Assembly (NCBI RefSeq): GCF_006345805.1
Contig: NC_043013.1
Coordinates: forward strand, 5,270,001-5,334,000
Direction of reading: 5' to 3'
Source: Octopus sinensis
Lineage: Eukaryota
DNA length: 64,000 nucleotides
How positions within the stretch are numbered: position 1 is the first letter of the stretch; each line of letters begins with the position of its first letter. The notes below the pieces were generated by a model. The model saw only the letters and a program-made list of their open reading frames with translations, was not told the origin of the DNA and ran no database searches. This document shows, piece by piece, positions 11,458 through 58,969 of the stretch. A program made the translations under genes and the position numbers.

Positions 11458-14400
11458 CATCATCATCATCATCATCATCATCATTTAACGTCCGCTTTCC
11501 ATGCTAGCATGGGTTGGACGGTTCAACTGGGGTCTGGGGAGCCCGAAGGCTGCACCAGGCCAGTCAGATCTGGCAGTGCTTCTACAGCTGGATGCCCTTC
11601 CCAACGCCAACCACTCCGAGAGTGTAGTGGGTGCTTTTATGTGCCACCGACACAGGTGCCAGACGAGGCTGGCAAACGGCCACGCTCGGATGGTGTTTTT
11701 TATGTGCCACCGACACAGGTGCCAGATGAGGCTGGCAGACGGCCACGCTCGGATGGTGTTGTAGTGGGTGATTTTATGTGCCACCGACACAGGTGCCAGA
11801 CGAGGCTGACAAACGGCCACGCTCGGATGGTGTTTTTTATGTGCCACCGACACAGGTGCCAGACGAGGCTGGCAAACGGCCACGATCGGATGGTGTTTGT
11901 TACGTGCCCACAGCACGGAGGCCAGTCGATGCGGTACTGGCTACGGCCACGTTCGTATGGTTTTCTTGTGTGCCACGTGCCACCGGCACTGGTACCACAA
12001 AGATACAAATTCCATTGATGTTCATCTATTTTGATTTGTTTTGATTTTCACTTGCCTCAACAGGTCTTCACAAGTGTCACAAGAAGGAAGGTATGCACAG
12101 GTGGACTGACTACGTCCCAGGTAGGGGCCACAGGTTATGGCCTGACTAGTCTTGCCGGGTCTTCGGATGCCAGATGAGGCTGGCGAACGGCCACGATCGG
12201 ATGGTGTTTGTTACGTGCCCACAGCACGGAGGCCAGTCGGTGCGGTACTGGCTACGGCGACGTTCGGATGGTTTTCTTGTGTGCCACCGGCACTGGTACC
12301 ACAAAGATACAATTCCATTAATGTTCATCTATTTTGATTTGTTTTGATTTGATTTGATTTGATTTGTTTTGATTTCATTTTGATTTTCACTTGCCTCAAC
12401 AGGCCTTCACAAGTATCACAAGGAGGAAGGTATGCACAGGTGGACTGACTACGTCCCAGGTAGGGGCCATGGGATATGGCCTGACTAGTCTTGCCGGGTC
12501 TTCGGATGGTGTTTTTATGTGCCACCGACACAGGTGCTAGATGAGGCTGGCGAATGGCCACGATCGGGGGTCTTCGGATGGTGTTTTTATGTGCCACCGA
12601 CACAGGTGCTAGATGAGGCTGGCGAATGGCCACGATCGGATGGTGTTTGTTATGTGCCCACAGCACGATGGCCAGTCGATGCAGTACTGACTACGGCCAC
12701 GTTCGGATGGATTTCTTGTGTGCCACAGGCACTGGTACCACAAAGATACAAATTCCATTGATGTTCATCTATTTTGATTTGATTTGATTTTCACTTGCCT
12801 CAACAGGTCTTCACAAGTGTCACAAGAAGGAAGGTATGCACAGGTGGAATGACTAGTCTTGCCGGGTCTTCGGAAGGTGTTTTTATGTGCCACCGACACA
12901 GGTGCCAGATGAGGCTGGCGAACGGCCATGATCGGATGGTGTTTGTTACGTGCCCACAGCACGGAGGCCGGTCGATGCGGAACTGGCTACTGCCACGTTC
13001 GGATGGTTTTCTTGTGTGCCACCGGCACTGGTACCACAAAGTGTGTGCCACCGGCACTGGTACCACAAAGTGTGTGCCACCGGCACTGGTACCACAAAGA
13101 TACAGATTCCATTGATGTTCATCTATTTTGATTTGTTTTGATTTTCACTTGCCTCAACAGGTCTTCACAAGTGTCACAAGAAGGAAGGTATGCACAGGTG
13201 GACTGACTACGTCCCAGGTAGGTGCCATGGGTTATGGCCTGACTAGTCTTGCCGGGTCTTCGGATGGTGTTTTATGTGCCACCGACACAGGTGCTAGATG
13301 AGGCTGGCGAACGGCCACGATCGGATGGTGTTTGTCATGTGCCCACAGCACGGAGGCCAGTCGATGCGGTACTGGCTACGGCCACTTTCGGATGGTTTTC
13401 TCTTGTGTGCCACCGGCACTGGTACCACAAAGATACAAATTCCATTGATGTTCATCTATTTTGATTTGTTTTGATTTGATTTTGATTTTCACTTGCCTCA
13501 ACAGGCCTTCACAAGTATCACAAGGAGGAAGGTATGCACAGGTGGACTGACTACGTCCCAGGTAGGGGCCATGGGTTATGGCCTGACTAGTCTTGCCGGG
13601 TCTTCGGATGGTGTTTTTATGTGCCACCGACACAGGTGCTAGATGAGGCTGGCGAACGGCCACGATCGGATGGTGTTGTTATGTGCCCACAGCACGATGG
13701 CCAGTGATGCGGTACTGACTACGGCCACGTTCGGATGGATTCTTGTGTGCCACCGGCACTGGTACCACAAAGATACAAATTCCATTGATGTTCATCTATT
13801 TTGATTTGTTTTGATTTTCACTTGCCTCAACAGGTCTTCACAAGTGTCACAAGAAGGAAGGTATGTACAGGTGGACTGACTACGTCCCAGGTAGGGGCCA
13901 CAGGTTATGACCTGACTAGTCTTGCCGGGTCTTCGGATGGTGTTTTTATGTGCCACCATGTTCCCACAGCACGGAGGCCAGTCGATGCGGTACTGGCTAC
14001 GGCCACGTTCGGATGGTTTTCTTGTGTGCCACAGGCACTGGTACCACAAAGATACAAATTCCATTGATGTTCATCTATTTTGATTTGTTTTGATTGATTT
14101 CACTTGCCTCAGCAGGTCTTCACAAGTGTCACAAGAAGGAAGGTATGCACAGGTGGATCGACTACATCCCAGGTAGGGGCCACGGGATATGGCCTGACTA
14201 GTCCTGCCGGGTCCTCTCATGCACAGCACACTTCCATAGGACTCGGTCTTCAGTCATTTCCTTGGTGAGACCTAAAGTTCGAAGGTCGTGCTTCACCACC
14301 TCGTCCCAGGTTTTCCTGGGTCTACCTCTTCCACAGGTTCCCTCAACTGCTAGGGTGTAGCACTTTTGCACGCAACTATCTTCAGCCATTCTCGTTACAT

Positions 14401-17250
14401 GACCATACCAGCGCAGCCGTCTCTCTTGCACACCACAACTGACACTTCTTAGGTTCAACTTTTCTCTCAAAGTACTTACACTCTGACGATTATGAACACT
14501 GACATTACACATCCATCGGAGCATACTGGCTTCATTTCTTGCGAGCTTACGCATATCCTCAGCAGTCACGGCCCATGTTTCACTACCATGTAGCATGGCT
14601 GTACGTACACATGCATCATATAGTCTGCCTTTTACTCTGAGCGAGAGGCCTTTTGTCACCAGCAGGGGTAAGAGCTCTCCTAAACTTTGCCCAGGCTATT
14701 CTTACTCTAGCAGTTACACTTTCAGCACACCACCCCCGCTACTGACTTGGTCTCCTAGGTAGCGGAAGCTATCAACTACTTCTAGTTTGTCTCCCTGGAA
14801 CGTGGTAGAAGTTGGTCTCTGCACATTTCCAGTGTTTATTGCTCCTGAGCATCTGCCACAGACAAAAACTATTTTCTTAGTTAGCCTTCCTTTGACATTG
14901 CTGCACCTCTTATGTGTCCATAGCTTACACTTGGTGCACCTTATAGAGTTTCTACCTACACCTTTTTTACAGATCGAGCAGGGCCATCTACCTGAAGTCG
15001 TTTGTGATTGGTCCACCTTCTTACTTATTAGGACTTTGGTTTTGGCTAGGTTGATTCTAAGGCCCTTCGATTCTAATCCTTGTTTCCACACCTGAAACTT
15101 CTCCTCCAGTTCTGATAGTGACTCAGCAATTAGAGCAAGGTCATCAGCATAGAGGAGCTCCCAGGGGCATCCTGTCTTGAATTCCTCCGTTATTGCCTGG
15201 AGGACTATGATAAATAGGAGGGGACTGAGGACTGAACCTTGGTGGACCCCAACCTCTACCCGGAATTCTTCACTGTACTCGTTGCCAACCCTCACCTTAC
15301 TAGCAGCGTCTCTGTACATGGCTCGCACAGCTCTCACTAACCATTCATCTATCCCTAGTTTCCTCATTGACTACCAGATAAGGGATCGGGGGACCCTGTC
15401 AAAGGCTTTCTCCAAGTCAACAAAAGCCAGATACAAGGGCTTATCTTTGGCTAGGTATTTCTCCTGCAGCTGTCTTACCAGGAATATAGCATCAGTAGTA
15501 CTTTTCCCTGGCACGAACCCAAACTGCATATCATCTAAGCTAACTCTCTCTCTAATTAATTGGGCTATAACCCTCTCCGTAACCTTCATTACCTGATCCA
15601 GCAGCTTGATGCCCCTGTAGTTATTTGTATCTAGGGCGTCGCCTTTACCTTTGTAGCAGTTGACTATTATGCTGCTACACCAGTCATTGGGTATGACTCC
15701 TTCGTGTATCACCTGGTTTACTATACGGGTGACTAAGCTATAGCCGACACTACCAGATATTTTGAGCATCTCTGCAGTAATTCCTGATGGGCCTGGGGCT
15801 TTCCTTGTTTTCATGCTTCTAATTGCCTTATCTACTAAGGAACTGTTAACTCGGATTGCTGGTCCCTCTGTTGGGTCGACATTCGGGAGACTCTCTTTAT
15901 CCCATTCATTTTCCTCATTCAGCAACCTTTCATAGTGGCGTCTCCAAGCCTCTCTCTTTGCATCCTCATTTAGCGCAAGTGAACCGTCATCCTTGCGAAC
16001 ACATTTCTCTCCTACCACGTCACGATTCTCTCTCACACACTGTCTTGCAACACGAAATACCTCAAGTCTTTCATCCTCACGGCGCAGGACATTGGCAAAT
16101 TTTTCTTTATCTGCCTCCCTCTGGCTAGATAGACCTGTCTCCTAGCTTCCCTTCTGGCAGTCTGATACACTTCCCTGCTACCACCGTTCTTCCAGGCCTT
16201 CCAAGCCTGTTCTTTTGTCTAATAGCCCTGTCAACAATATTGTTCCACCACCACGTTATTTTGGGTCTTAAGGGGACTTTGCACCAGCCACAGATCTGGT
16301 CAGCGGCTTTCAGCAGGTTGTCCCTCAGAAACGTCCAGTTGTCTTCTACCCCATGCATAGCTATACCCCCTTCCACTTCGTCAAAGGCTTCAAGTAACAT
16401 ATCTCTAAATCTCTGTCCATTCGCAGGGTCTTTTAGCTTCCAGACCCTTCTTCTCCATGTTGGTCGTCTTCTAGTCGCCCTCTTAGTCCTGATCCTAAAG
16501 TCACTAACTACCAGTCTATGTTGTGGGGTGCATTCTTCGCCTGGGAAGGTTTTGGCATTTATAAGCAGCCATCTTTCCCTTTTTCTGGCAAGGATGTAGT
16601 CAATCTGGCTGGTGTGTCTGCCAGAACGGTAGGTGACTAGGTGAGAGGTGGGTTTCCTGAAGTTGGTATTGCAGACCATAAGGTCATTTGCATCGCAGAA
16701 CTCCAGCAGCCTGGTTCCCTTCTCGTTGCGGGAACCATAACCGTAGCCTCCATGTACGCCATGGAAGCCCCCAGCATGTCGTCCAACATGCCCATTGAAA
16801 TCACCAGCACAAAGAGAAGGTCCCTGTCGTTCGTCAATGAGGTGGTCTGCAGTAGGGTGTCATAGAAACTGTCTTTCTGTCCATCGGGTAGCCCTGGCTG
16901 AGGGGCATAGGCCGATATAATGGTTGCTAATCTATTATGAAGCACTATTCTAATCTTAAGTATTCTGTCACTTACTCTGATTACCTCAATTACTCTATCT
17001 ACCCATTCTCAGCGATAAGTATACCCACGCCACCGACCCCGTCAGTGTTCCCTGCCCAGAAAATCTTGTACCTGTGTTCCTTGCCTGTGAGGAACCTAGC
17101 AGATCCTCCTCTCCACCTTATTTCTTGCATGCAACATACATCAACCCATCTCCATTCAAGCATCTCAACTATCTCGCCAGATCTACCTTTCAGTGTCCCA
17201 ACGTTGAGGGTGCCCACCCTGAAAGAGTGGAAGGTATGGACCCGAGAGGA
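11458..17250 (-). mobile_element. Near-full-length, inactivated RTE-clade LINE (APE endonuclease plus RT) with long repetitive 3' region
   Basis: Six ORF pieces 17217-14198: GTLNVGTL..QE.RW, SAYAPQ, QIDYIL..., GKGDALDTNNYRGIKLL, QFGFVPGKST, FVDLEKAFDRV, GVHQGSVLSPLLF, LLYADDL, RLRWYGHV, RGRPRKTW; frameshifts and an in-frame TAG near 15371; (GAT)n tail at 11458-11484; no clear TSD. Confidence 0.92.
11640..14200 (-). repeat. Tandem array of about 335-bp units, each containing the RTE ORF end, stop and (AAATC)n
   Basis: Marker GATACA(A/G)AT at 12002, 12306, 12745, 13099, 13432, 13772, 14051 (spacings 304, 439, 354, 333, 340, 279). Confidence 0.9.
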
Positions 17251-23716: not shown

Positions 23717-33015
<9,299 letters not shown>

Positions 33016-33447: not shown

Positions 33448-33474
33448 TCATGGATTACAGAGGTAGATTTGAAC
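33448..33474 (-). CDS. Pif-like gene exon 8 (terminal)
   Basis: Strong pyrimidine tract plus CAG acceptor; VQIYLCNP*; AATAAA on the minus strand at 33296-33291. Confidence 0.85.
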   Translation of the reverse strand, partial: VQIYLCNP

Positions 33475-36400
33475 CTGTTAATAAAAGAAAAAGAATTTTA
33501 ATCACACGATGTGGTTTTATTCTGATGGGACTAACAACATACTACCTTTATTGGTAAATTAACCTGCCTGACAGGGGATTCGGTGAGACCAAAGTTGACC
33601 TTTAATCCATTGAAGAATCAATATTGATTTTGGCCTTGACTACATATTTATGGTACTGGTGCTCACAGAATAATGGACAACATTGACCGTTAGATTTGAA
33701 CTTAGAATTAGGAGACACAAAACTACTGCACTACTTTTCCGTCTGCTCTCAGTACTTAAATTTGCCTGATTTGACCATGTTATTCATCGATTAGAACTGG
33801 TCGGTAAGGGGCTTTTGCTGGACTGCTGACCTTTTATATTTATGTCAAGGTAGCCATATAAAATGTACCGCTAAGTTGTTTGGCTCTCTTTAATGACTTC
33901 AGTGACAGAAGGAAGCCATAGTCTTACTTAAGTCTTGTGTTCTTCCATAGGAGACCAACCCTTGTAAAGCAGTACCTTATAGGGGCAGAGGTATTTGCTT
34001 ATATAATAATAATAATGAAATTATTGTATAGTGCTCAGGTGCACCACAACTTGTCAGAAAGTTGGTGCTTGGTACCAAAACTGCCCTGATTCTATGACAA
34101 TAAAATCTTCCTATCAAAATTTATGTTCAAAACACCAGTTTAAAAATGAGTTCATTAAATACAACAAAGTTAAATGCTAAGTTCATTATTTTCAAAATTG
34201 AAACTGTACACAGCAGAAACAGCATAACAAAAATGGTTAAAGAATCAGAAGTTACTAGTAAGCTGAAAGGTAATTCTTTTTAAATTGTCCCCTGCTTGTA
34301 CAAGCAATTATTGGGGTCCTTTGGCAGTAATATATCTTTGATAACATTTATGCCAGTAGGGTGTATAAGATTATTGAAGAAACTCAGAATTAGTAGTAAG
34401 TTGTTATGTGGTGATAATCATTATGACAAATAGGTTAATTGTACAGAAAGAAAAGGCTTACCTCTTTTATTAGACCTGTGAAGCTTGGGAAATGACCACA
34501 TTTACCAACAACAAAACCACTTGGTCTAGGTTCAATTTCACCTGATAGCACATAAAAAGAGAACTTTAGTTTTAGTAAGCACAAACACTTTGTATGTTTA
34601 TATGTAAACAAAAGTTGTTTAGGCAGTAACTTTGAGAAACTTTTTCAAAGTTAGTTATGGTTGTGATAATGAAGCTAGCTTTCGAACCACATGGCTTCAG
34701 GTTCAGTCCCCCTGCTTGGTGCCTTGGTCAAGTGTTTTCTATAGCTCTGAACCAACTGTGTTCTTAGATCTCTGGTAGCTGCAATTCTACAGGTGAGACG
34801 TGGTAATATTTTGGTGAGGCATATGTAGGGTTATGTTGAATTTATACCTTTTGTACACAATGTTTAGTATACTAATAAAGAAAGGGGGCAATTTGAGAAT
34901 GAGTTGTTAAAAAAAAAAATCCTTCACATCCCTTCTGTGGACAATTTTATTAAATTTGACACTTTAGAGACAACAGATCATTTCCATCATATTGAAGATC
35001 TGATGTCACTAAAGTAGGGAAAGATTATTTCCTTCAATTTAGTAGTATGTAAGGTAATTAAGATGTGTGTGCATGTAGTATAGAACTGGTCAATACTGAA
35101 AGCCATGCTATTTTAATTCCCTATGGAGAAATAAACTGGAGACAGTGTGTGGGTGTATTTAACTCTTATCTCTGGGGACAAAAATCTAGGTACACAGGAA
35201 AACTGTTGGGATAATAAATGGCATTGGGGGTGGATAGATTGAGATATTTATGGCACTGGTAACATGCATGTAAATTAACAGGTCAGTTTGTGAATTCAGC
35301 AAAAAGGTAAAGAAAAACTTCCATCATTGATCCAAAGGCTTTTGCAGCTGAGAAAGTTCACAGAATATTTTATATTTCTTTTGAGCATATTTTCTGAAAG
35401 TTTATACTGGAATCACTTTGTGTTTGATTCAAAAATGCATAAAACGAGTAGTGCAAAGTAAAAGAAAGTTTGTTAATATTCTGAGGAATATTTAAAATTT
35501 ACATTTATACCCGCTATTCATGACATGCTCATCAAATTAAGGGCGAAAAACTCGAATTTTCCAAAGTCCTCTCCACTCCCTTAGGAAGGATTTCCCACAA
35601 AATTTTTTATAATTGTAATCTATGCTATTTGAAAGGTATATTATTTAAAAAAAAAAATTAAGGGCGAAAAACTCAGATCATGAATTTTCTGAAGTCCTTT
35701 TCCCCTTCCCCATTGCTTTCTGCACGTTTTTCTTTTCATATTCATTTACTACACATTTTTTGTTTCCAAGTAATATTGTAAACATTAATCAAATTTTGAA
35801 TAACAGAAATTAAATATCACAAGGAGGCATCAGGATTCTAGAAATGATTCAGTAGTGGGGAATGACCAAAAATTGGTTGGGTACCACTGACTGGTAGTAA
35901 ACAAAAGACTTGTTTTGGTGTCCATTCCTGTCCTCCATGCAAGTGTGATTACAAGGTTATTGACCTCATTTGGAAACTGGTGGTAGCAACAGTATCCAGC
36001 TGTAGAAAACTCTGCCCCAACCTATTTCTGTAAATTTTATATATGTATCCTGACACAAGACACTAGGAAGAGCATCTAGCTTAAGAAACCATACCTAAGT
36101 AAATCTCACAATGGGGGAGTAAAGATTATTTGCCAACATAACATGGCAGTCCTGATTTAGGAAAATGTTGCTGTAATTTAGCCCCAGGAAACATCAACTC
36201 CAGCTGGCTATACAACACGATCTGTGTCCTTATATAACCTGGAAATTGCGATACACAGATATTGTTTTGAGCTGAGTGGGGGTGCTAGATTTCCTTGTTC
36301 GAAAATATAAGGACACAGATCGTGTCGTATAGCCAGCTGGAGACCATGTCTCCTGGGGCTAAATTACAGCAACGTTCGTCCTAAACCAGGACTGCCATGT

Positions 36401-39400
36401 TATGCTGGCAAATAATCTTTACTCCATACCTAAGCATGATGCAGTCCACCCACTCAGATTCTACAGAACTATGGTAGTACACACATGCACGTGGAATAAA
36501 AAGAAAAAGAACCAACTAACCTTGCAATGTGACTCTCTCTGATACAGTTTGTCCCAGTTGTGCTTGGAATATTTGACCATCATAATTCAGAGTAAGGTTT
36601 TCCCACTGGTTGGGCTGTTAAAGGAATTAAGAGTGTGACACAATAATAATAAAAAATAAATGTGCACTTTTAAAGCCTGGCCAGGTTCATGGGGCCCAGT
36701 TTCCAGTTTCAATGGCGTATGTGTTCCCCCACAGCTGGACGAGAAGCCAGTCCATTGCAGCATTACTCATTTTTGCCAGCTGAGTGGACTGGAGCAACAT
36801 GAAATGAAGTGTTTTGCTCAAGAACACAATGCGTCACCCGGTCCAGGAATCGAAACCACAATCTTATGATCATGATGCTGACACCCTAACCACTAAGTCA
36901 CACGCCTCCACTGACACAATAATGCTGTCACATAAATAAGACTGGTAACAGTGATGTAATTGTTTGTACTAGGGTCTAGTCGATTATACTGACCCCCAGT
37001 GCTCCACTGGTACTTGAAAAGATGAAGGGCAAAGTCAACCCTGAAATGCTGCTAGGAATTTTGTCTGCTGGAGTTGTGATTCAGCCAGCTCACCATCTTC
37101 TACTATGATGCTTAACGTAACAGCTCTATAGCAGCATAATAGGAGTGGCTGTGTGGTAAGTAACTTGCTAAGCAACCATATGGCATCTTGGGCAAGTGTC
37201 TTCTGCTATAGCCCTGGGTCGACCAATACCTTGTGAGTGGATTTGGAAGACGGAAACTGAAAGAAGCCTGTCGTATATATGTATGTGTTTGTCTCCCTAG
37301 CATTGCTTGACAACCAATGCTGGTGTGTTTACGTCACCTAACGGTTCGGCAAAAGAGACCGATAGAATAAGTACTGGGCTTACAAAGAATAAGTCCCGGG
37401 GTTGATTTGCTCGACTAAAGGCGGTGCTCCAGCATGGCCGCAGTCAAATGACTGAAACAAGTAAAAGAGTAAAGAGTATAGTAACACACTAGCAACATCA
37501 TCATCATCATCTCTCCATGCTGGCATGGGTTGAATGGTTCGGCAGGGAATTATCCAAATTCCAACTGTCTTGTGGTGGCATGGTTTCTATAGCTGGATGC
37601 CATCCATTTAACAGTGTGCTAGGTGCTTCTGACATGACACTGGAACAGGTAGCATTATGATTCTGATATTTGGCACAATGCCAGCAATTTTAGGGTAGGT
37701 ATAGTTGACTAGTTTTTATTTTATCAACACTACAGGTGCAGGAGTGGCTGTGTGGTAAGTTGCTTCTTACCAACCACGTGGTTCCAGGTTCATTCCCCAT
37801 TGCGTGGCACCTTGGGCAAGTGTCTTCTAATATAGCCTCAGGCCGACCAAAGCCTTGTGAGTGGATTTGGTAGACGGAAACTGAAAGAAGCCCATCGTAT
37901 ATATGTATATATCTATGTTTGTCCCCTGAACATCGCTTGACAACCGGTGCTGGTGTGTTTGCGTCCCCGTAACTTAGCGGTTCGGCAAAAGAGACTGATA
38001 GAATAAGTCCTAGGGTTGATTTGCTCGACTAGAGGCAGTGCTCCAGCATGGCCATAGTCAAATGATTGAAACGTAAAAGGATGAAAGGCAAAGACAAAGT
38101 TGAACTCGGAGTGTAAAGTGCCAGACGAAATACTGCTGATCGTGTCCAGTATGCTAACGAAGCTGACAGCTCATTGTTTTAATAGTAATCCTTTAGGCAC
38201 AAGGCCTGAAATTTTGCAGGAAGGGGCCAGTCAATTACATTGACTTCCCCAGTGCTCATCTGGCCCTTATTTCCTCAATCCCGAAACCATGGAAAGCAAA
38301 ACCAAACTCAGAATGTGAAGATGGGTGAAATGCCACTAAGCATTTTGTCTGGCTCACCACTTCCCAATAATATCATAAAATAACATTATCCCTTTATTAT
38401 GGAGATGTACTTGCATAGCAAGTAACCTGATCTGAGATCGTGTGCTGAAACAGAAAACAATTGCAGCATGAAATACGCCATTTAAAAACACACAAAAACT
38501 GTTAGATTCACTTCAATGTTTAAATTTATTTCTCAGTGAACAGGTCGCGGTCTCAAAGCGACGAAACTATTTTGACAAATTAAATTTAAATGTCGAAATG
38601 AATCAAACGTTTCTTGCGTGTTTTTAAATTAACCATTTAGCATTCAGATTAATCTGTCAAATGTAATCCTTATTTATCCACATTGCTTTGAACGAATCCT
38701 GCATCAGCTTATAGCATTGAGATTTTGATGAGGTAACTATTAGTTTTTAGAATAATACTAGCAGCATTGCCCGGGTATGTAAGAGCCCCTAGTAGGCAAC
38801 GACTAATCCCAATCTAGTCCTTTCCCTCTAGGGGACGAAGGCACATGTGTAGGTTGCAATGTCTTCTCTTCACTCGAATACTTCTGTGTATACGATGTTC
38901 CTAGCTGTCCCTTTGGGCGAAAACATGAAAACATCATTGCACCTCCTAACGCTTGAACAGCCCACGTACAGCCCAGAAAATGTGTTTCATATAAAAATCT
39001 TAGATTCTCGACCCCATGTTGAATTTATCGATTTTTTCAGAACTGGGGGAACTTTTCAAAATTTTCGCTGCATTAGTTTTGAATTATGACATTGGGCTTG
39101 GGCTATGTGTGTGTCAAGTTTCATCAGAATCGGTTGAAAGCCGTGGTCAGGGTGAGGGTACAACCTGACAGACACACAGACAGACAAACTGCCGTTTATA
39201 TATAGAGAGATTGTGCGCGATAGGTGTGAGAGGCCACATCTGGCTAGTTTGAATATAAAGCAGGTAGAATATTTACTAAAGGGCTAAAATATTAAATGGT
39301 TATACTGAACTAACACAGTGGTCACTCAGAAATGAGGGTGACTTGTAGTATAGCTTTTGTCATTTGTTTTAGTTGCCTATGTAACCATGGAAACAGACAC

Positions 39401-41731
39401 CTTGCAACTGTTAATCTAACACAACATCCAGTGTGTTTGGTGCAGGAATCGAACCTATAACCTCATGATTGTGAGCTCAGTGCCTGAACCACTAAGCCAT
39501 GTGTCAACAATATTAAAATATCAATACTGTAATAGAATTAAAGATACTTTGTTCCGTATATTATTGAGGCAATTGAATGGGAATGAACTTATATTCACTG
39601 CATCATGTCAAAAGCATTGGTACTGGTGATGTGTATAAAGCACCCAGTACACTCTGTATAGTGGTTGGCATTAGGAAGGGCATCCAGCTGTAGAAGCCAT
39701 GCCAAAACAGACTATTGGAGTCAGGTACCACTCTCTGGCTTGCAAGCTCCTGTCAATCCGTCCAACCCATACCAACATGGAAAACAAACACTGAAAGATG
39801 ATGGTCTCTGCTTCCAGAAATGGTAGGACAATTACCGCATAACAACACTACTATAATTTAAAGCCTTTACCGTATACTTTAGACGAAGGACTTTTGGTTC
39901 AGATTTATTTGTGTCAATCAGCATCAAAACATCCCTTGTTTTCCAGTTGAGAGCCAAAGCCACAGAGCTGGTCTTCTGACGGTTGTATTGGTAACAGTTA
40001 GATATTAAATAGTCAATTTGGTTCCTATGGCTTCCAGTGTCTTTAAACTTGATGTGAATTGTGAGCTTGTTACCAATGCGAGCACCAGAGAAGCGCCAAA
40101 TTTTAATGTGGCTGTCATTATTAAAAACACCTGCTCCTTGTTGCGGATAGACGCCAAACACAGTGAGAGGAAGACCATTCCTTGATTTATCAGCAATTTG
40201 GTCACTGAAGTCCAAGAAGAATTCTGGTTCACATTCTAAAGTAAAACAAATATTATTATCATTAATACATAATTGCAGGAATGGTAATGTGGTTAAGAAG
40301 TTTGCTTCCCAACCACATGGCTTCAGGTTCAGTTTTACTACATGGCACCTTGGGGTGGGGGGCAACCTAAGCCTTGTGAGTGGAAACTCTAGAAGCCTGT
40401 TGAATATATATATGTTTAAGTCACAATATACGCTTTCAAGTAATCTGGTGGTACTCATAAAAGAAGCTCAACGTATCATTGTACAAACCATATAGAATAT
40501 ATACACAGACATGCAGGAAGTAAATAGACACCTTTAAATCTTCAAAATTTCTGACCTAAATGTCTTAATAGGTTTTCAGAAGTGTAGAATTTACAATGTA
40601 ATTATTCTTCTTTATTCCAGGTGCCATTAAATTAAACATTTGCAAAGAGTAACCATACCATGCTCAAAAAATTCAGCAGAACTGTCAGATTTTCAAAGAG
40701 GTTGTATTGTTGGGCAATCTGAGGCTGGTCTTAGCCAGCGAAAAATTGCAGAAAACCTTCAAATTCCTCTTGCTACTGTTAATAGAATTAGAGTGCAATT
40801 CAAAAGCGAAGGAAAAGTATCTATAGATTCTCATCCCAGCCGACCTGGGCCCGCGGAAAGGAAGCTTTGCTGTTTGAAGAGAATTGTGGAAAACAAACCC
40901 CGTTCGAAGGCTTCTGACATTGCAAAACAGCTAGAAGTAAGTCCAAGAACGTGTGTTACATATCTACATAAGCTTGGGTATTATGGATGAGCAACTAGAA
41001 GAAAACCTCTCCTTCAACCAATCAATATCAAATAAAAGATTTTGTAAATTAAAGGTGTCTATTTACTTCCTGCATGTCTGTGTAGATGGACAGATATAGA
41101 TATAGACATATATAGGTAGATATATACTCAGATTTATGTATGTAAGGAAGTTATATACATACACATTCACAAACACACATTCACACACGTACCTATATGC
41201 ATGCACATAGCATATTTTATCCTTGTTTACAAACAGAATTAAGTATGTTCCTACTTACCTGTAACTTCAACAGATCCAATGACGCACTGACATCTAGTGT
41301 GATTATAGATAGTGCCTGCAGAACAAGGTCGAGGTCTCATTCCATGACCAGGGACAAATTCCAGGTAATATCGTCTGTCCTTGTGGAATGGTTTCAGGTG
41401 GCACTCTGTATAATATTACAAGACAACGATTAATTCTTATTGCATTTAGTGGTCACAGCAGGATTACAGTAGTTTAGTAATGAGGGTTGTGTTAGAATGG
41501 ACATGGGAAGACGGGAAAGAAATGAAGCAAGCATGCTCTGTTGAATGTGCTTTTCCATGCTTGCATGGATCGAGCTGAATTTGTTGAGGCACATTCTCTA
41601 TGGCTGGATGCTCTTCCTGTCACCAATGCTCACTCGTTTCCAAGCAAGGTGAGATTTCCCTTTGGTTTTTTTTCCTAGAAGACTGGAAACAAAGACACTC
41701 ATTTACAATCACAGCATGATATTAAAACAAG

Positions 41732-41766
<35 letters not shown>

Positions 41767-42186
41767 TGGCTTCCGTGCCAGAGGCATTTAAAGGGCACCA
41801 TTTGAGCGTGATCGTTACCAGCATCGCCTTACTGGCACCTGTGCCATTGGCATGTGTAAAAAAATTCGAGCAAGGTCATTGCCAGTACCGCCTGACTGGG
41901 CCCCATGCTGGTGGCACGTAAAAGCACCCACTACATTCTCGGGGTGGTTGGTGTTAGGAAGAGCATCAAGCGGTAGAAACTCTGCCAGATCAAGACTGGA
42001 GCCTGGTGCAGCCATCTGGTTTACTAGCCCACAGTCAAACCGTCCAACCCATGCTAGCATGGAAAGCGGACATTAAACGACAATGATGATGATGACACAC
42101 TGTATATATACATACATATACTGTGTGTATCATCATCATCATCATCATTTAACGTCCGCTTTCCATGCTAGCATGGGTTGGACCTG

Positions 42187-42241
<55 letters not shown>

Positions 42242-45200
42242 TGATCGTTACCAGCGTCACTTTACTGGCACTTGTGCCAGTGTGCAAGTGGCACGTAAAA
42301 AAAACACCATTTGGGCGTGGCCATTGCCAGTACTGCCTGACTGGCCCTCGTGCTGGTGGCACGTAAAAAGCACCCACTACACTCTCGGGGTGGTTGGCGT
42401 TAGGAAGAGCATCCAGCTGTAGAAACTCTGCCAGATCAAGATTGGAGCCCGGTGCAGCCATTTGGTTTGCCAGTCCTCAGTCAAATCGTCCAACCCATGC
42501 TAGCATGGAAACGGACGTTAAACGATGATGATGATATATGACGGGCTTCTTTCAGTTTCTGTCAACCAAATCCACTCACAATACTTTGATTAGCCTAAGG
42601 TTATAGTAGAAGGCACTTGCCCAAGAAGCTATGCAGTGAGACTGAACCCAAAACCATACGGTTGAAAGCACATTTCTTACCACACAGCCACACGTGTGTG
42701 TGTGTAAAATGAATATAGAGTTCTCTTACCTGGTGGTACATATGATGATGGCGTGAGTTCCTGCTGTTCTCCAAGAGCCTCATCATTGAAATTACCACTT
42801 ATTTGAAAATCTCTTGAATTCCCATTCGGAACAGCAGAAGGTCTTTCATTTCTTGCATCCATGATTTCATCTTCACCCTGGCCCTTTGAAAGGAATGGTA
42901 AACGTCCCTGAATATTGTGAACTTTTTGGAAACCATCCTCAAAAAGGTTCTTCTTTGCTGTTGTCACTCCCATGCTTTCAACTGGAAAGAAATCCTGTCG
43001 AGTCAAATGTGGAGATTCCTGGACCATTCCATTTTCTTTTGTTCCTGTATTGACACCAGATGGAAGGTTTTGGTTACTATTACCAAATGAAGTTGGTCCA
43101 TTGACCTGAAACTTATATTCTTGTCCAAATCGTTCACGATTAGACCTAACAACAGAATCATTAATCAGATTATCTTGAAAATCTTCATTATTTCTGCCAA
43201 CAGACCCTTTTGCTTTCCCACCCTCAAATACACCTGATGCAGCCACATTATGTTCATTTAAGCTGATTTTGGCATTTTCTGGAAATCTTCCTGATGGATT
43301 GAGTTTTGGTGAGTTTACTGACAATGAAGCCTCTGCTTTAGAACTGCTCTGTTCAGAGTTGACATGGAATCTATTTTCCAAGTTTTGCTCTTTAATGGAT
43401 GAATCTACAGCTTTGACTTTTGCTTTAGCATCTGCAAGATTTTGTCCCTTTTCAAAATCGGTTGTCACCTGAACAGTAGAATCAGTTCGGAGTTCTTTGT
43501 TTTTACCTTCTTGAATGTTTGGTTCCACCAAATTTTCTGATTCTGATAAATAAATGGAATAAACACAATAATTATAAGCCTTTTTTTTTTACTATAGTCA
43601 CAAGACTTGACATTTTGGGAATGGGATGAGACATCGACTCACCCCCACCACCATCCTGCATAACTGGTACTTAATTTATCGACTCTGAAAGAAGGCAAAG
43701 TCGACTCTGGCTGCATTTGAACTTAAAATGTGAAGACAGACAAAATACCACTAAGCATTTCATCCAGTGTGCTAACAATCCTGCTAGCTCGCCGCCTTAA
43801 ACACAATAATAATAATAATAATAATAATAAACACAAAAACACAGTAATAAACTTTTAACAATAGTCATCAATTAAATGATGACGTGTGTGTGCATGCGTG
43901 TAGGTGTGTGTGTGTATGGCTTAGTGGTCAGGGCATTCAGCTCACAATCATAAAGTCACGAAAGTGGTTTCCAGTGGCATGTTGCTTCCTTGAGCAAGAC
44001 ACTTTACTTCACCTTGCTCCAGTCCACTCAGCTGGCAAAAACTAGTTATGTCTGTAATCCAAAGGGCCAGCCTTGTCACACTGATTATGTGCCACACTGA
44101 ATCTCCCTGAGAACTGCATTAACAGTATGTCTGTGGAGTACTCAGCCACTTGCAGGTTAATTTCAAGAGCAATCTGTTCCGCTGATTGGATCAGCTGGAA
44201 CAATTATCATCATAAACAATAGTTTAGTTTAATCAGCTCTTAATCCCTCAGTAGACGTTAATCTATTGATCCATTATACTTACCAGTGTTTAATTCATAG
44301 TAATTCCTCGTTTTACTTGTAACCAAATTGTAATTGCTTCTGTTGAACTTGGATAAATAGCAAATTTCATAAAGTAAATCAAACTCAAAGGAAATGCATG
44401 GCCTGGTTTTGAGACAGAGTTCCGCACACCTGTCTACTGTGTATTGAGAAAAGGCCCCAAGTTGGCCGCTGCCAGGAAGTGTGTAGGAAACAAGGGGTGC
44501 AAAACGGTCAATTCCTGGAAATATATAAAAATATATTGAAGTTAAACTTTAAGAAAAAAATCAAACATGTTAGTATGCCAATGTATGTCTATATATGTGT
44601 GTATGTAGAGGCGCAATGGCCCAGTGGACGGTCATAGAAAAATATTTAGGAAAGACTTCTGCCCATCCACCCCAATTTTCTCTCTTTTTTTTCTTTTTTT
44701 TTTCCAAAAACCCCCATTTTCAGATATGGAGATTCCGGAAAATTGCCAAAAAATCGGCATTTTGAAATTTGGCCCCCCCCCCCGCTTCTATTTCTTCATT
44801 TTTCACTAACCATAACCCTAAATGCAACCCTAACTCTAACTACAAATATTTTTGGAAATTTTTTCAGTATCATTAATCTCCATATTTTTCTCCATATTTT
44901 TTTTTAAAAAGTGGGGGGGGGGGATTTAAAAATGCTGATTTTTGCCAATTTTTTTGCAGATTCATATTCTCTGTAGCCGAAAGTGGGGATTTGTGTAGAA
45001 AAAAAGATTAAATAAAAAAAGTGGGGTTTTTGGTGGGTACAAAATGAAGTCTTGCCAATATTTATTATCTTAAATTAGAATGAAATAAAACATTTTCCAT
45101 TTGTCTAATTCCTATAACCACTCTGTTATTATACTCCCTTTCCTCCTGTCACCAAGCCTAGTATGTGCACTCATCTTGTACCTTTCTGTATCTCACTTTT

Positions 45201-45388
45201 ACTCTTTCTCCTCTATATATAATATAAAGAGTGACTGAAGAGATCAACCTACCTACATTCATATTGGCTTTTATTATATATATTATCATATATGCATGAG
45301 CGCGCACACAAACACAGATACACTCACCTGATAAAGCACTGGTTACACCATAGAACATCAGCAGAATTATTGTCTGAAATGGTTTCAT
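33448..45388 (-). CDS. Secreted 605-aa protein: signal peptide, PAN/apple, low-complexity, chitin-binding-like and LamG/ConA-like modules (Pif-like)
   Basis: Exons 45388-45328, 44514-44284, 43542-42730, 41405-41259, 40235-39871, 36614-36521, 34541-34462, 33474-33448; all GT-AG, phases match, total 1818 nt with no internal stop; domain calls are by motif recognition. Confidence 0.9.
34462..34541 (-). CDS. Pif-like gene exon 7
   Basis: EIEPRPSGFVVGKCGHFPSFTGLIKE; GTAAGC donor. Confidence 0.88.
36117..36424. mobile_element. Foldback MITE, same family as 6924-7226
   Basis: GAGTAAAGATTATTTGCC...GGCAAATAATCTTTACTC. Confidence 0.8.
36521..36614 (-). CDS. Pif-like gene exon 6
   Basis: PNQWENLTLNYDGQIFQAQLGQTVSERVTLQ-G; LamG-type W..(L).YDG motif. 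Confidence 0.88.
37735..38078 (+). mobile_element. tRNA-derived SINE, same family as 12-432
   Basis: Full head to tail; another copy at about 37135-37480. Confidence 0.8.
38529..38579 (+). ncRNA. Hammerhead ribozyme-like motif with G3:C8 core, family F5, copy A
   Basis: TTTCTCA-GTGAACA-G-GTCGC(GGTCTCAAA)GCGAC-GAAA-CTA-TTT/TGACAAA. Confidence 0.6.
38757..39211 (+). mobile_element. Non-autonomous Helitron/Helentron-like element nested in a MITE
   Basis: Starts TACTAGCAGC...CCCGG, ends (ACAG)n-AAACTGCCGTTTATATATAGAGAGAT; resembles Lep1/DINE-type ends (from memory, not searched). Confidence 0.5.
39871..40235 (-). CDS. Pif-like gene exon 5, LamG/ConA-like domain N-part
   Basis: CEPEFFLDFSDQ...GAGVFNNDSHIKIWRFSGARIGNKLTIHIKFK...VLRLKYT; GTAAAG donor at 39870. 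Confidence 0.88.
40504..41082 (+). mobile_element. Internally deleted Tc1-like transposon
   Basis: Perfect 34-bp TIRs (40504-40537, 41049-41082), TA on both sides; HTH region ELSDFQRGCIVG..EAGLSQRKIAENLQIP; no DDE domain. Confidence 0.92.
41259..41405 (-). CDS. Pif-like gene exon 4, reduced chitin-binding type 2-like module
   Basis: CHLKPFHKDRRYYLEFVPGHGMRPRPCSAGTIYNHTRCQCVIGSVEVT; 147 nt, phase 1-1, GTAAGT donor. Confidence 0.85.
42730..43542 (-). CDS. Pif-like gene exon 3, N/S/E/G-rich low-complexity region
   Basis: 813 nt phase 1-1 exon matching ORF 42677-43531; GTAAGA donor. Confidence 0.88.
44284..44514 (-). CDS. Pif-like gene exon 2, PAN/apple domain
   Basis: IDRFAPLVSYTLPG...TVDRCAELCLKTRPCISFEFDLLYEICYLSK...NYYELNT; 231 nt, phase 1-1. 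Confidence 0.88.
44652..45053. mobile_element. Degenerate foldback element with about 140-bp imperfect arms
   Basis: AAGACTTC...AAAATCGGCATTTT...C-run on the left mirrored by G-run...AAAATGCTGATTTT...GAAGTCTT on the right. Confidence 0.5.
45328..45388 (-). CDS. Pif-like gene coding exon 1, signal peptide
   Basis: MKPFQTIILLMFYGVTSALS-G, GTGAGT donor, in-frame stop upstream of the ATG; acceptor at 45435 implies an upstream non-coding exon. Confidence 0.85.
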
Positions 45389-45504: not shown

Positions 45505-45872
45505 ACTCTTTTACTTGTTTCAGTCATTTGACTGTGGCCATGCTGGAGCACCGCCTTTAATCTAGCAACTCGACCCCAGGACTTATTCTATCGGTCTCTT
45601 TTGCCGAACCGCTAAGTAACGGGGACATAAACACACCAGCATCGGTTGTCAAGCAATGCTAGGGGGACAAACACAGATACACAAACACACACACACACAT
45701 ACATATATACGACGGGCTTCTTTCAGTTTCCGTCTACCAAATCCACTCACAAGGCTTTGGTCGGCCCGAGGCTATAGTAGAAGACACTTGCCCAAGGTGC
45801 CACGCAGTGGGACTGAACCCGGAACCATGTGGTTGGTTAGCAAGGTACTTACCACACAGCCACTCCTGCGCC
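45505..45872 (-). mobile_element. tRNA-derived SINE, near-consensus copy
   Basis: Reverse complement of the 12-432 family. Confidence 0.85.
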
Positions 45873-47589
45873 TTTTTATTATCTTTTAAGGCAGCAAGAG
45901 CTGGCAGAACTGTTAGCATGATGGGCAAAGTGCTTTGTGACATTTCATCTGCCTTTATGCTCTGAGTTCAAATGCCAACAGGGTTGATTATGCCTTTCAT
46001 TCTTTTGGGGTCAATAAACTAAGTACCAGTTGAGTACTGGGGTTGATGTAATCGACTTACCCATCTGCCATGAAATTGCTGGCCTTGTGCCAAAATTTGA
46101 AATCGTTATTATTAAGGTGGTACAACAGCTGTACTGTTATATGTCAGTGTATGACTTTGGTAATTCATAGTCTCAGAAATTAAACTACAATCTTCACAAA
46201 TTCTGATGTTTCAAACCAATGAAGCAGCTCAGGTGTAGAAGACTTCCTCAACTAAATCTCTTCCCCTGTCTTTACCATGAGCACCACATATTTTGATTAA
46301 ATTATGAGGGACAGGCATGGCTGTGTAGTTAAGAATTTTGTTTTGGGTTCCGTTTTAATGCATGGCACCTAGTGCAAGTGTCTTCTATTGTAGCCTCAAG
46401 TGTAGACCAAACTGGTAAGGATATATTCAGTTATGATAATCTTAACTAAAGGCTAACATTGTAAAGTACAATGATTATCATCTTCCAATAGAAGTGAAAC
46501 CGGTCTGTAATAATATTGTTTGGAGTAATTTAATTCATTACAATAAAAAAGGAATTGTGCATCTTTTTTTATTATTATTGCTGTATGTGTATATACATAC
46601 ATACATGTTTGTTCCTTCTCGAGCCATGCCTGGCTAATAAGGGCCAGTTTCCCAGTTTCCTTGATGTATAGATTCTCCACCTGGATGGGATGCCAGTCCG
46701 TCGCAGGTGAGCTGCAAGATGCAGGAGGAAAGAGTGAGAGAAAGTTGTGTCGAAAGAGTCAGCAGAATTTCGCCATTGCCTTCTGCCAGAGCCGCGTGGA
46801 GCTTAGGTGTTTCGCTCATAAACACACACACATCGCCGCGATCCCTCGACCGCGAGTCCACTTCTCTAACCACTAGGCCATGTGTCTTCACATACATACA
46901 TACATACATATATCCAAATATAGAGGTAGGGTCAAAAATTGAGGGTTGGGTGGGTGGGTGGGGGCTAAATGCCAATTTAGAAAAGATAAAAATTTTATCA
47001 AAAAGAAAAATGAAAAACAAAACGTTATTACCAACTGTGATGTAGCCAGGGTTGACATACTGAAAGAGGTGGGGAATTTTCTGTTCTGCAGACCTAATTT
47101 CAACAATGGCAACACAAAAGATTCGATGGATTGTCAGAGAAAAAGTATTTCATATGTAATGGATGTACATAAGTAGTTTGTAGCAACCGTATCCAAGGAA
47201 TAATACTTCTTACCTTGTTAGAAATATCGTGCACACTTTTTTTTAAAGCTAAGTCCACATTGTAAAGTGGTTGGTGTTTGGAAGGGCATCCAGCTGTAAA
47301 AACCATGCCAAAAGAGGCCCTGCCAGTGCTGGTGTCACATAAAAAGCACTCAGTCCACTCTGTGGTGTGGTTGGTGTTAGAAAAGGCATCCAGTCATTAA
47401 AAAAACCCCTGCTAAAACAGACTGTGAAGCCTGGTGCAGTCTTCTTCCAAACCAGCCTCTTTCAAAGAGTCCAACCCATGCCAGCATGGAAAACAGACAT
47501 TAAATGATGATGATGACCGAATCAGTTGTAGAGGTGGGTGTTATAAAAACACACAGTAATCAGAATATGGTGAAGGTGCAAAACTGTTT

Positions 47590-48274: not shown

Positions 48275-48650
48275 TCTTACTCTCTTTTACTCTTTTACTT
48301 GTTTCAGTCATTTGATTGCAGCCATACTGGAGCACTGCCTTTAATTGAGCAACTCGACCCCGGGACTTATTCTTTTGTAAGCCTAGTACTTATTCTATCG
48401 GTCTCTTTTGCTGAACCGCTAAGTAACGGGGACATAAACACACCAGCATCGGTTGTCAAGCAATGCTAGGGGGACAAACACAGACACACAAACACGCATA
48501 TATATATATACGACGGGCTTCTTTCAGTTTCCGTCTTCCAAATCTGAGGCTATAGTAGAAAACACTTGCCCAAGGTGCCACGCAGTGGGAGTGAACCCTG
48601 AACCATGTGGTTGGTAAACAAGCTACTTACCACACAGCCACTCCTGCGCC
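48270..48650 (-). mobile_element. tRNA-derived SINE
   Basis: Same family, small internal deletion. Confidence 0.8.
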
Positions 48651-50438: not shown

Positions 50439-50629
50439 TTAAAGTATGACAGAAGGACAGGAACAGATGTCTTGGAGTAGAGAAGATATATGTCTATCCC
50501 AGTCAAAAAAGAAAAGAAGTTTATGAAGAGGTGCCAGGGTGTAAGATATACATACAGATGGAGCCCCATCATTTTTGAGGATTCAGCTGTTTGATCAAAT
50601 AGTAAGTGGCTGAGTATTCTACAGACATA

Positions 50630-50988
50630 GGCGTAGGAGTGGCTGTGTGGTAAGTAGCTTGCTTACCAACCACATAGCACCTTGAGCAAGTGTCTTCTAC
50701 TATAGCCTCGGGCCGACCAAAGCCTTGTGAGTGGATTTGGAAACTGAAAGAAGACCGTCGTATATATGTATGTGTGTGTGTATATGTTTGTGTGTCTATG
50801 TTTGTCCCCCTAGCATTGCTTGACAACTGATGCTGGTGTGTTTACGTCCCCGTAACTTAGCGGTTCGGCAAAAGAGACCAATGGACTAAGTACTAGGCTT
50901 ACAAAGAATAAGTCCTGTGGTCGATTTGCTTGACTAAAGGCGGTGCTCCAGCATGGCCACAGTCAAATGACTGAAACAAGTAAAAGAG
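50630..50988 (+). mobile_element. tRNA-derived SINE
   Basis: Same family, head to tail. Confidence 0.8.
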
Positions 50989-55269: not shown

Positions 55270-56133
55270 GGACTCCTTCCAAACTTCTCCAGTGGTGAAA
55301 TGATTAAAGAAGACTCTCTATTTATGGAAGATGGGATTCCTTGTCACACGGTTAAAATGACCCAAGATTTGTTGGAAAAGAATGGCATTAGAAAGCTTCC
55401 ATAGCTAATCTAGTCACCAGATATGAACTGTATAGAACACCTCTGGGGCATAATGGAAAGGACATTTCGTAAACAGAACAAGAAAGCCTCTTCAAAGCCA
55501 GATCTTTTGAGATTATTGCATGAAAGTCAACAAGAAATTCCGCAAGAGAATATTCACCATCTGATCAGTAACATGCCTAATAGGGCCCTTGCATTGAAAA
55601 ATGCAAAGGGCATGTCTACTCTTTTACTTGTTTCAGTCATTTGACTGTGGCCATGTTGGAGCACCACCTTTAGTCAAGCAAATCGGCCCCAGGACTTATT
55701 CTTTGTAAGGCTAGTACTTATTCTATCGGTCTCTTTTGCCGAACCGCTAAGTTACGGGGACATAAACACACCAGCATCGGTTGTCAAGCGATGTTGGGAG
55801 GACAAACACAGACACACAAACATACACACACACACATATATATATACACATATATACGACGGACTTCTTTCAGTTTCCATCTACCAAATCCACTCACAAG
55901 GCTTTGGTCGGCCCGAGGCTATAGTAGAAGACACTTGCCCAAGGTGCTACGCAGTGGGACTGAACCCTGAACCATGTGGTCGGTAAGCAAGCTACTTACC
56001 ACACAGCCACTCCTACGCCTAAATATCAAATGTTCACATTATAATAACTAACAAATAATTTGAATGGATAAATTCAGATTTAAATAAATTTTAATGATTA
56101 TAAGGGTGTCAATTTACTTCTTTCATGTCTGTG
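55270..56133 (+). mobile_element. Tc1-like 3' half (DDE C-part) with a nested SINE at 55617-56019
   Basis: EDGIPCHT...SPDMNCIEHLW motif; right TIR 56100-56133 matches 41049-41082, followed by TA. Confidence 0.8.
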
Positions 56134-58583: not shown

Positions 58584-58969
58584 TTCTTTTACTTGTTTCA
58601 GTCATTTTGACGATGGCCATGCTGGAGCACTGCCTTTAGTCAAACAAATCGACCCCAGGACTTATTCTTTGTAAGCCTGGTACTTATTGTATCAGTGTCT
58701 TCTGCCGAACCACTAAGTTATGGGGGATGTAAACACACCAGCATCGGTTGTCAAGCGATGTTAAGAGGTAAACACAAACACACAAGTATATACATACACA
58801 TACATATATACGATGGGCTTCTTTCAGTTTCCATCTACCCAATCCACTCACAAGGCTTTGGTCGGCCTGAAGCTATAGTAGAAGACACTCACCCAAGGTG
58901 ACATGCAGTGGGACCGAACCTGGAATCATGAGGTTCGTAAGCAAGCTACTTACCACACAGCCACTCCTA
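58584..58969 (-). mobile_element. tRNA-derived SINE
   Basis: Same family. Confidence 0.8.

Follow-up and report, generated by a model that had tools for sequence, protein, structure and literature searches.

The molluscan proteins BMSP, LamG3 and Pif have been described as a grouping (bioRxiv 10.1101/2021.07.10.451900; PMC9635652; PMC11291548). Within it, Pif of Pinctada fucata (Pif97/Pif80) and BMSP of Mytilus galloprovincialis combine one to four VWA domains and canonical CBM_14 chitin-binding modules with a partial or complete LamG-type C-terminus, and Pif80 contains Asp/Lys/Arg-rich, aragonite-binding low-complexity regions (PMC11291548). Described LamG3 proteins place three ChtBD2 domains before LamG3. 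Chitin-containing matrices in which family members occur include the shell of Nautilus and the eggcase of Argonauta hians (PMC8700984; bioRxiv 10.1101/2021.07.10.451900). According to two papers about the eggcase and the genome of Argonauta, shell-less octopuses retain LamG3/Pif-like genes for reasons unknown (bioRxiv 10.1101/2021.07.10.451900; PMC9635652); for LamG3 the bioRxiv paper speaks of 'presently unknown reasons'. Here we analyze a relative of these proteins encoded in a 64,000-nucleotide (nt) stretch of the Octopus sinensis genome (contig NC_043013.1, positions 5,270,001 to 5,334,000), called the window below, in which all coordinates are given. The gene lies on the minus strand between 45388 and 33448 and is predicted to encode a secreted protein of 605 amino acids (aa), in which a signal peptide is followed by a PAN/apple module, a linker, a four-cysteine (4-Cys) module and a LamG-like domain. 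On balance we consider it probable that this is an intact, shuffled protein of the Pif family that serves as a matrix adaptor. It is an unusual domain combination within a known family, not a new kind of gene.

The octopus protein shares with the LamG3/Pif-like proteins its predicted secretion, a C-terminal Laminin_G_3-type domain placed after a Cys-rich, chitin-binding-type module, and presence in shell-less octopods, and its C-terminal unit is homologous to theirs over the whole 235 aa. Whereas described LamG3 proteins have their three ChtBD2 domains, however, it has none that Pfam recognizes, only the 4-Cys module, with the PAN module and a 271-aa linker instead. A LamG-type C-terminus and a chitin-binding-type module likewise tie it to the same wider family as Pif and BMSP, from which it differs in having neither VWA nor canonical CBM_14; its N/S/E/G-rich linker is also quite distinct from the aragonite-binding regions of Pif80. 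The first-pass annotation, made from the sequence alone, had called the protein an intact Pif-family member. That description stands for the broad BMSP/LamG3/Pif family and fails for Pif in the strict sense, as there is no VWA domain and no Pif80-type region.

We rebuilt the gene model from the sequence: on a stop-to-stop translation of the minus strand (33-46 kb), splice sites were placed by visual inspection and with a tblastn search that used the C-terminus of a database orthologue as query. This gave eight exons, read from 45388 to 33448, whose spliced open reading frame (ORF) encodes 605 aa. The product is identical, residue for residue, to XP_029647169.1 (isoform X1 of O. sinensis LOC115221094, labeled 'uncharacterized protein' in RefSeq), and the animal is therefore an octopus, as had been supposed; the uninterrupted eight-exon frame proposed earlier is equally borne out. 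The further remark that six of the exons were invisible as ORFs depends on the ORF length cut-off, since exons 1 and 7 do lie inside short listed ORFs of 76 and 58 aa. All seven introns have GT-AG ends. Introns 1-4 are short (about 0.7-1.3 kb each) and all in phase 1, while introns 5, 6 and 7 are in phases 0, 1 and 0, respectively.

Exon 1 (45328..45388, minus strand, as are all exons of the gene) opens with the ATG at 45388 and encodes a signal-peptide-like N-terminus, MKPFQTIILLMFYGVTSALS/G, before ending in phase 1 at the donor GTGAGT. The signal peptide, also part of the first-pass annotation, was judged by eye from a charged n-region, a hydrophobic core and the small residues ALS-G, and exon 1 is the sole start/signal-peptide exon that we found upstream. 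The next three exons have a phase-1 intron on both sides and lengths divisible by three: exon 2 (44284..44514, 231 nt, aa 21-97) holds the PAN/apple module, exon 3 (42730..43542, 813 nt, aa 98-368) the Cys-free linker of 271 aa, and exon 4 (41259..41405, 147 nt, aa 369-417) the 4-Cys module with the pattern C-x25-C-SAGTIY-x4-C-x-C. The LamG-like domain is spread over the remaining exons. Exon 5 (39871..40235, 365 nt, aa 418-539) opens with the family motif C-x-P-E-x2-L-x-F and supplies the first two thirds of a LamG3/ConA-like jelly roll (E 3e-31 against our LamG hidden Markov model, HMM). The domain continues through exon 6 (36521..36614, 94 nt, aa 540-570, PNQWENLTLNYDG..., LamG HMM E 8e-4), which has AG/GT sites and is 100% identical to the RefSeq C-terminus by tblastn, and exon 7 (34462..34541, 80 nt, aa 571-597, GEIEPRPSGFVVGKCGHFPSFTGLIKE, LamG HMM E 3e-7). 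Exon 8 (33448..33474, 27 nt) encodes the final eight residues, VQIYLCNP, and the TGA stop at 33448-33450, completing the family's C-terminal motif Y-x-C-x-P.

The edges of these exons match the edges of the modules as drawn by HMMs. PAN_1 covers aa 46-95, within exon 2; the 4-Cys HMM spans aa 367-418, against aa 369-417 for exon 4; and the LamG HMM begins at residue 418, exactly where exon 5 starts. The earlier statement that the first four introns are all of phase 1 and bracket single modules is thus upheld by the computed phases and the coinciding HMM edges. Symmetrical phase 1-1 exons that end at module boundaries are the classical layout of exon shuffling, and four successive phase-1 introns would be expected by chance in roughly 0.3^4, or about 1%, of cases, where 0.3 is an estimated rather than a computed phase frequency. 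The architecture most likely arose by exon shuffling, with two phase 1-1 exons inserted in the octopod lineage.

The C-terminal part of the protein places it in its family. An exhaustive HMMER search with aa 369-605, the 4-Cys plus LamG unit (4L), retrieved 169 relatives with E<=1e-3, and for 73 the E value was 1e-10 or lower. Of 100 matches that cover most of the query, 96 have the unit at the C-terminus, the median number of residues after it being four. Word-indexed searches were far weaker: a 539-aa query returned Octopus orthologues only, a 43-sequence profile three proteins, and the cuttlefish protein described below nothing except itself. The best match outside Octopus is a 'Sushi-like protein' of Mytilus coruscus (AKS48157.1; E 2e-41, 36% identity; P0006 in our set), which two Nautilus shell-matrix contigs also match best by BLAST (PMC8700984, Table 1). 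It shares the whole 4L unit, C-terminal in both proteins, and differs in its N-terminal VWA, its three CBM_14 domains and its lack of PAN. Further relatives include a 'protein PIF-like' from Argonauta hians and another from the chiton Liolophura sinensis, bivalve chitin-binding type-2 proteins and one Haliotis protein. On this evidence the 4L unit and the C-terminal unit of molluscan BMSP/LamG3/Pif proteins are homologous.

Around this unit the family varies widely. Pfam finds CBM_14 in 88 of 146 relatives, VWA in 26 and Laminin_G_3 (E<=1e-3) in 32; by local HMMs the commonest architectures are CBM14-4-L (46), 4-L (31), VWA-CBM14-4-L (20) and L alone (19), followed by rarer others. By these counts the invariant core of the family is the 4-Cys plus LamG pair, with VWA and 6-Cys CBM_14 as optional additions. 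The first-pass annotation had proposed a search for a PAN, CBM14 and LamG architecture; our scans of the 4L relatives showed PAN in none of those listed: PAN_1 occurs in the octopus protein only among the first 58 relatives, and among the second 88 it is absent from the 25 families listed of 39. With phmmer, neither the PAN exon nor the linker matched any of 149 relatives. The octopus protein has no VWA by Pfam, the window has no VWA-like exon anywhere, and searches of the 64 kb in any frame found no hidden VWA, CBM_14, extra 4-Cys or LamG exon. A tandem paralogue was also sought in the window, and none was found.

In a neighbor-joining tree of 113 units, which is distance-based and without support values, the Octopus pair lies beside a protein of the cuttlefish Sepia esculenta (P0008, 4-4-L), followed by a second 4-4-L protein (P0010) and a 4-L protein of Solemya (P0011). 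The cuttlefish protein, translated from an RNA-seq transcript (SRR19578109; PMC10141105), has 361 aa comprising a signal peptide, two 4-Cys modules and LamG, and matches the octopus protein at E 4.5e-33 with 33% identity. In-frame stops precede its ATG, so that its N-terminus is complete and it truly has no PAN. Both are cephalopod proteins with predicted secretion and with neither VWA nor 6-Cys CBM_14; in the cuttlefish protein a second 4-Cys module occupies the position of the octopus PAN and linker. The octopus protein therefore groups, in these comparisons, with short members having neither VWA nor 6-Cys CBM_14. The earlier idea that PAN stands in place of VWA does not survive, as VWA occurs in only about 26 of some 149 relatives and the nearest of them (Sepia 4-4-L, Solemya 4-L) lack it. 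Judged from the sequences, PAN and linker rather occupy a position that is filled in this subgroup by an additional 4-Cys module, or by no more than a short N-terminus.

Exon 4 had been described as chitin-binding-like. It is not a canonical CBM_14 but a 4-Cys module related to one. Our local 4-Cys HMM matches octopus aa 367-417 with E 1.6e-18, whereas a local 6-Cys CBM HMM matches neither the protein nor any frame of the 64-kb window. The module recurs in about 130 of 149 relatives, with the general pattern C-x25-C-x2-G-T-x-[FY]-x4-C-x-C, and adjoins the LamG domain in 112. Some relatives carry tandem arrays of 4 to 11 copies, and four proteins (P0007, P0014, P0018 and P0025) consist only of tandem 4-Cys modules with Ser/Glu/Asp-rich spacers between them. 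On one of these array proteins, P0014, Pfam CBM_14 scores E 1e-12, aligned to profile positions 23-48 of 53, which is the second half of the domain. In hhalign, 87 clean 4-Cys modules (the first-round alignment) matched a 6-Cys CBM_14 profile taken from the same proteins with a probability of 90% (E 1.6e-6, 43 columns), compared with 0.3% for a reversed control. The hairpin C-x2-G-T-x-[FY]-x4-C corresponds to the conserved aromatic hairpin of CBM_14. By profile comparison, exon 4 is a truncated 4-Cys derivative of CBM_14 (peritrophin-A), or is related to its second half. Pfam has no dedicated 4-Cys model, and CBM_14 matches only the second half of the module.

The LamG-like domain that follows falls below the Pfam threshold (Laminin_G_3, 16 bits, E 0.012, cut-off 27.6), and the earlier assignment is sustained by homology and by the predicted fold. 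AlphaFold models aa 369-605 from 43 sequences as all beta, with a predicted local distance difference test score (pLDDT) of 94 and a predicted template modeling (TM) score of 0.80. Foldseek against the PDB gave more than 500 matches at E<=1e-3, the top ones all being ConA/LamG-type jelly rolls: the lectin-like subdomain of clostridial neurotoxin binding domains, the LamG/TSPN domain of NEL and domain 4 of a GH43 arabinanase, with TM scores of about 0.6 and identities of 11-18%. Homology and fold together confirm a ConA/LamG-type jelly roll as the predicted structure of this domain. A relationship to toxins, which the clostridial top matches might have suggested, was rejected as generic ConA-like fold similarity (TM about 0.6, 11-16% identity). 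The near-invariant Asp433 and Asn497 are kept in the octopus domain, as are all family-invariant Cys, Gly and Phe residues in the protein.

The PAN module is what sets the octopus protein apart. Exon 2 alone scores 27.9 bits against Pfam PAN_1 (E 2.2e-6), with PAN_2 and PAN_3 as weak co-hits, and orthologues bear the UniProt name 'Apple domain-containing protein'; together with a full-length score above the Pfam cut-off, this upholds the PAN call of the first-pass annotation. The pattern of its core cysteines (C50, C54, C60 and C72), C-x3-C-x5-C-x11-C, recurs in the PAN module of a copper radical oxidase (6RYV), to which the octopus module aligns weakly; unlike true apple domains, the octopus module has no third, outer disulfide. 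Sequence searches of the PDB with the full protein and with the PAN exon returned nothing significant.

The linker that joins this module to the 4L unit is Cys-free, hydrophilic (grand average of hydropathy -0.95), N/S/E/G-rich and mildly acidic (isoelectric point 5.1), with 4.8% D, 6.6% K and 4.4% R, and has no credible family match in Pfam. It had been described as a low-complexity module of 271 aa; the length is right, but its window entropy of 3.4-3.9 bits and the lack of internal repeats show that it is not strongly low-complexity. AlphaFold gives it a pLDDT of about 30, and it is probably a flexible, disordered spacer.

The exons make up a single intact gene that is conserved in the genus Octopus. 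Annotations of O. bimaculoides (XP_014778140, XP_052829925) and O. vulgaris (CAI9735534) contain the same chain of exons. In O. bimaculoides the locus (CM046617.1, L002), located by exact-sequence look-up of the protein P0005, is collinear with positions 21-64 kb of the window and keeps all eight exons and nearly all splice sites, the exception being the exon-3 donor, which is shifted by an in-frame insertion. Look-ups of P0001 and P0002 matched no contig. Relative to O. bimaculoides, the ratio of nonsynonymous to synonymous substitution rates (dN/dS, Nei-Gojobori) is 0.22 for PAN, 0.19 for the 4-Cys module and 0.18 for LamG, against 0.62 for the linker, whose indels (21 and 30 nt) are all in-frame. 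At least this LamG3/Pif-like gene of a shell-less octopus is, by these ratios, under purifying selection. The supplement of PMC9635652 does not list the octopus PAN gene, and the published O. bimaculoides 'LamG3' (Ocbimv22010162m) may be either the same gene or a paralogue; a literature search for the accession numbers of the protein found no mention.

RefSeq isoform X2 (595 aa) lacks 30 nt of exon 3, at about 43446-43475 on the minus strand, which replaces TDSTVQVTTDF by I. The lost 30 nt lack GT-AG ends, and a short direct repeat, GATT, borders them; they are absent in O. bimaculoides and present in O. vulgaris, and the difference looks like an indel or an annotation artefact, not a real splice isoform. 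At the C-terminus, the O. sinensis and O. vulgaris proteins end in ...YLCNP, as is typical of the family, while in O. bimaculoides Arg replaces the TGA (L002 about 75494) and 26 residues are added. At the N-terminus, O. bimaculoides isoform X1 has 24 extra residues, MKAKTKKKNSTLLGHRNLLKSYNN, from a called gene that starts about 54 kb upstream of exon 1 (L002 10001-63800). This extension is probably a prediction artefact or a non-secreted isoform, because it would bury the signal peptide.

These features enable us to propose a mode of action, drawn from the family context and from general knowledge of PAN and CBM_14, in which the protein would be a bivalent, secreted matrix adaptor. Its anchor would be the 4L unit, binding either a polysaccharide (chitin being the most plausible) or a matrix partner, and Asp433 and Asn497 of the LamG-like domain could form a lectin-type or Ca2+ site. 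The linker would keep the PAN module at a distance, where it would bind a second ligand, either a protein or a carbohydrate. The ligands of PAN/apple domains are varied and include both kinds, and PAN/apple proteins occur in apical extracellular matrices, for example the PAN+ZP cuticle proteins of nematodes and insects. Like the octopus protein, the latter are secreted and join PAN to other matrix-binding modules; the likeness would be a functional analogy only, as the octopus protein has no ZP domain and no homology to them beyond the PAN module. In a shell-less octopus such an adaptor would suggest a non-mineralized, secreted, chitin-containing or apical matrix, candidates being the beak, radula, sucker lining, stylet, gut cuticle or egg coat. 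The role in chitinous structures other than shell that the first-pass annotation suggested is thus plausible. A further step, that the PAN, linker and 4L combination is an octopod-specific innovation in which exon shuffling re-tooled a shell-matrix module, after loss of the shell, into an adaptor that builds or anchors a non-mineralized structure (for example the sucker cuticle, the beak or radula interface, the stylet, the gut cuticle or the egg coat), is in our view doubtful.

Several observations weigh against an intact matrix adaptor of the Pif family. The canonical chitin-binding domain is missing, with no Pfam CBM_14 match on the octopus protein even at E<=10, and we know of no test of chitin binding by the 4-Cys module. 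To our knowledge the function of the LamG3 domain is unknown even in shell proteins. The full-length PAN_1 score barely exceeds its cut-off (21.9 bits against 21.4) and drops to 20.7 in O. bimaculoides X1, and AlphaFold on the full-length protein gives aa 21-97 a pLDDT of only 35-50, from an alignment covered there by five near-identical sequences. The place beside the cuttlefish protein comes from the distance tree described above, with no support values. Finally, the protein collection holds the 605-aa protein from genome annotations only, with no RNA-seq-derived copy, and isoforms that skip exons 2-4 would stay in frame, because these exons are all phase 1-1.

The alternative that survives best accepts the gene model and denies the chitin or matrix role, taking the protein as a set of generic lectin or adhesion modules that act in mucus, the egg coat, or immune or pathogen recognition. 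The absence of canonical CBM_14 would fit such a protein, as would structural neighbors that are carbohydrate- or receptor-binding jelly rolls from many unrelated proteins at 11-18% identity, and the varied protein and carbohydrate ligands of PAN/apple domains point the same way. The octopus has no shell, moreover, and the role of LamG3 there has been called unknown (bioRxiv 10.1101/2021.07.10.451900). However, the 4-Cys module is fused to this particular type of LamG domain, in more than half of the relatives it follows bona fide CBM_14 domains, and it is itself CBM_14-related, with the conserved aromatic hairpin kept. The shell of Nautilus and the eggcase of Argonauta hians also contain family members (PMC8700984; bioRxiv 10.1101/2021.07.10.451900), so a purely generic role, though a serious contender, seems to us rather unlikely.

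It is also conceivable that the 605-aa model arose as an artefact of prediction or stands for a minor isoform, and that the gene really makes a plain, short LamG3/Pif-like protein of signal peptide, 4-Cys and LamG, from which the PAN and linker exons are skipped, or to which they never belonged, being part of another transcript. Skipping the symmetrical exons 2, 3 and 4 would keep the frame, the closest relatives have the short layouts 4L or 44L and no PAN, and the collection offers no transcript-derived 605-aa copy, the supporting models all being computational annotations. Yet the PAN exon is under purifying selection in this very frame (dN/dS 0.22) and the linker has accepted in-frame indels only; introns 1-4 are short, and exon 1 is the only upstream start and signal-peptide exon found. 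The annotations of three species join the same exons, and that of O. vulgaris differs at the start of exon 3, where it lacks the first ten residues (SENLVEPNIQ), which suggests that it was constructed independently; the difference itself is consistent with an alternative exon-3 acceptor. We therefore regard an artefact or minor isoform as improbable, and joining of the PAN exon to the LamG exons in the mRNA as likely. The absence of the octopus protein from RNA-seq-derived records may reflect low or very restricted expression, or uneven sampling. The relative from Sepia esculenta, for its part, is represented by dozens of RNA-seq contigs, and a single member of its cluster, P0159, is present on 68. 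Decay of a former shell-matrix gene toward a pseudogene, in a lineage without a shell, can be set aside as very improbable. Compared with many family members the gene has lost VWA and 6-Cys CBM_14, its linker changes rapidly (dN/dS 0.62), and the stop differs between O. sinensis (TGA) and O. bimaculoides (the 26-aa read-through). Three Octopus species nevertheless have an intact ORF and canonical splice sites, each of the three folded modules has a dN/dS of about 0.2, and every family-invariant Cys, Gly and Phe is retained.

The ribosomal protein S15 (uS19) gene lies at 23927-33014 on the plus strand (exons at about 23927-24001, 27231-27365, 30453-30570 and 32898-33014), tail-to-tail with the PAN gene, the two stop codons being 434 bp apart; the same neighbor (Pfam Ribosomal_S19) is present at the O. 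bimaculoides locus. An interspersed repeat of about 370-400 bp, resembling a short interspersed nuclear element (SINE), has more than 20 copies or fragments in the window with 65-93% identity, among others at 45505-45873, 37141-37480, 37734-38079, 42534-42691, 40275-40354, 34662-34741, 12-430, 734-1152, 4295-4688, 48289-48650, 50629-50988, 55618-56020 and 58585-58968. Upstream of the PAN gene, a full copy stops 117 bp short of the start codon, and several copies lie in introns 3-6 of the gene; copies are also found at the O. bimaculoides locus. Intron 4 contains, on the opposite strand (40640-40990, plus), a 116-aa ORF with transposase-type helix-turn-helix (HTH) domains (Pfam HTH_23 E 8e-9, with a weak Sleeping Beauty HTH), probably a Tc1/mariner-like remnant. 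A fragmented retrotransposon lacking long terminal repeats (non-LTR) lies at 14198-16679 on the minus strand. The two halves of RVT_1 (E 3e-11 and 6e-16) and a PHD-like zinc finger are encoded there by consecutive ORFs, which stops or frameshifts interrupt. A 175-aa ORF at 2190-2717 on the plus strand has a Pro/Ser-rich tail (…RRPPMPLPRRKSESSEDASSPPNSSTTLPPPLPLRSK…) and matches nothing in Pfam; it could belong to another gene as an exon, or be a chance frame.

Domain shuffling is a familiar and well-documented feature of molluscan matrix proteins, and the wider importance of these results is accordingly modest. For annotation of the family it is useful to know that the 4-Cys plus LamG pair is its core and that the 4-Cys module is an unmodeled CBM_14 derivative, which would merit a family definition of its own. 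For the octopus, a PAN/apple module seen in no other sampled family member provides a handle on what the 4-Cys and LamG pair does outside shells. If the octopod-specific adaptor is real, it would be a concrete case of biomineralization genes surviving, and changing their function, after the loss of the shell.

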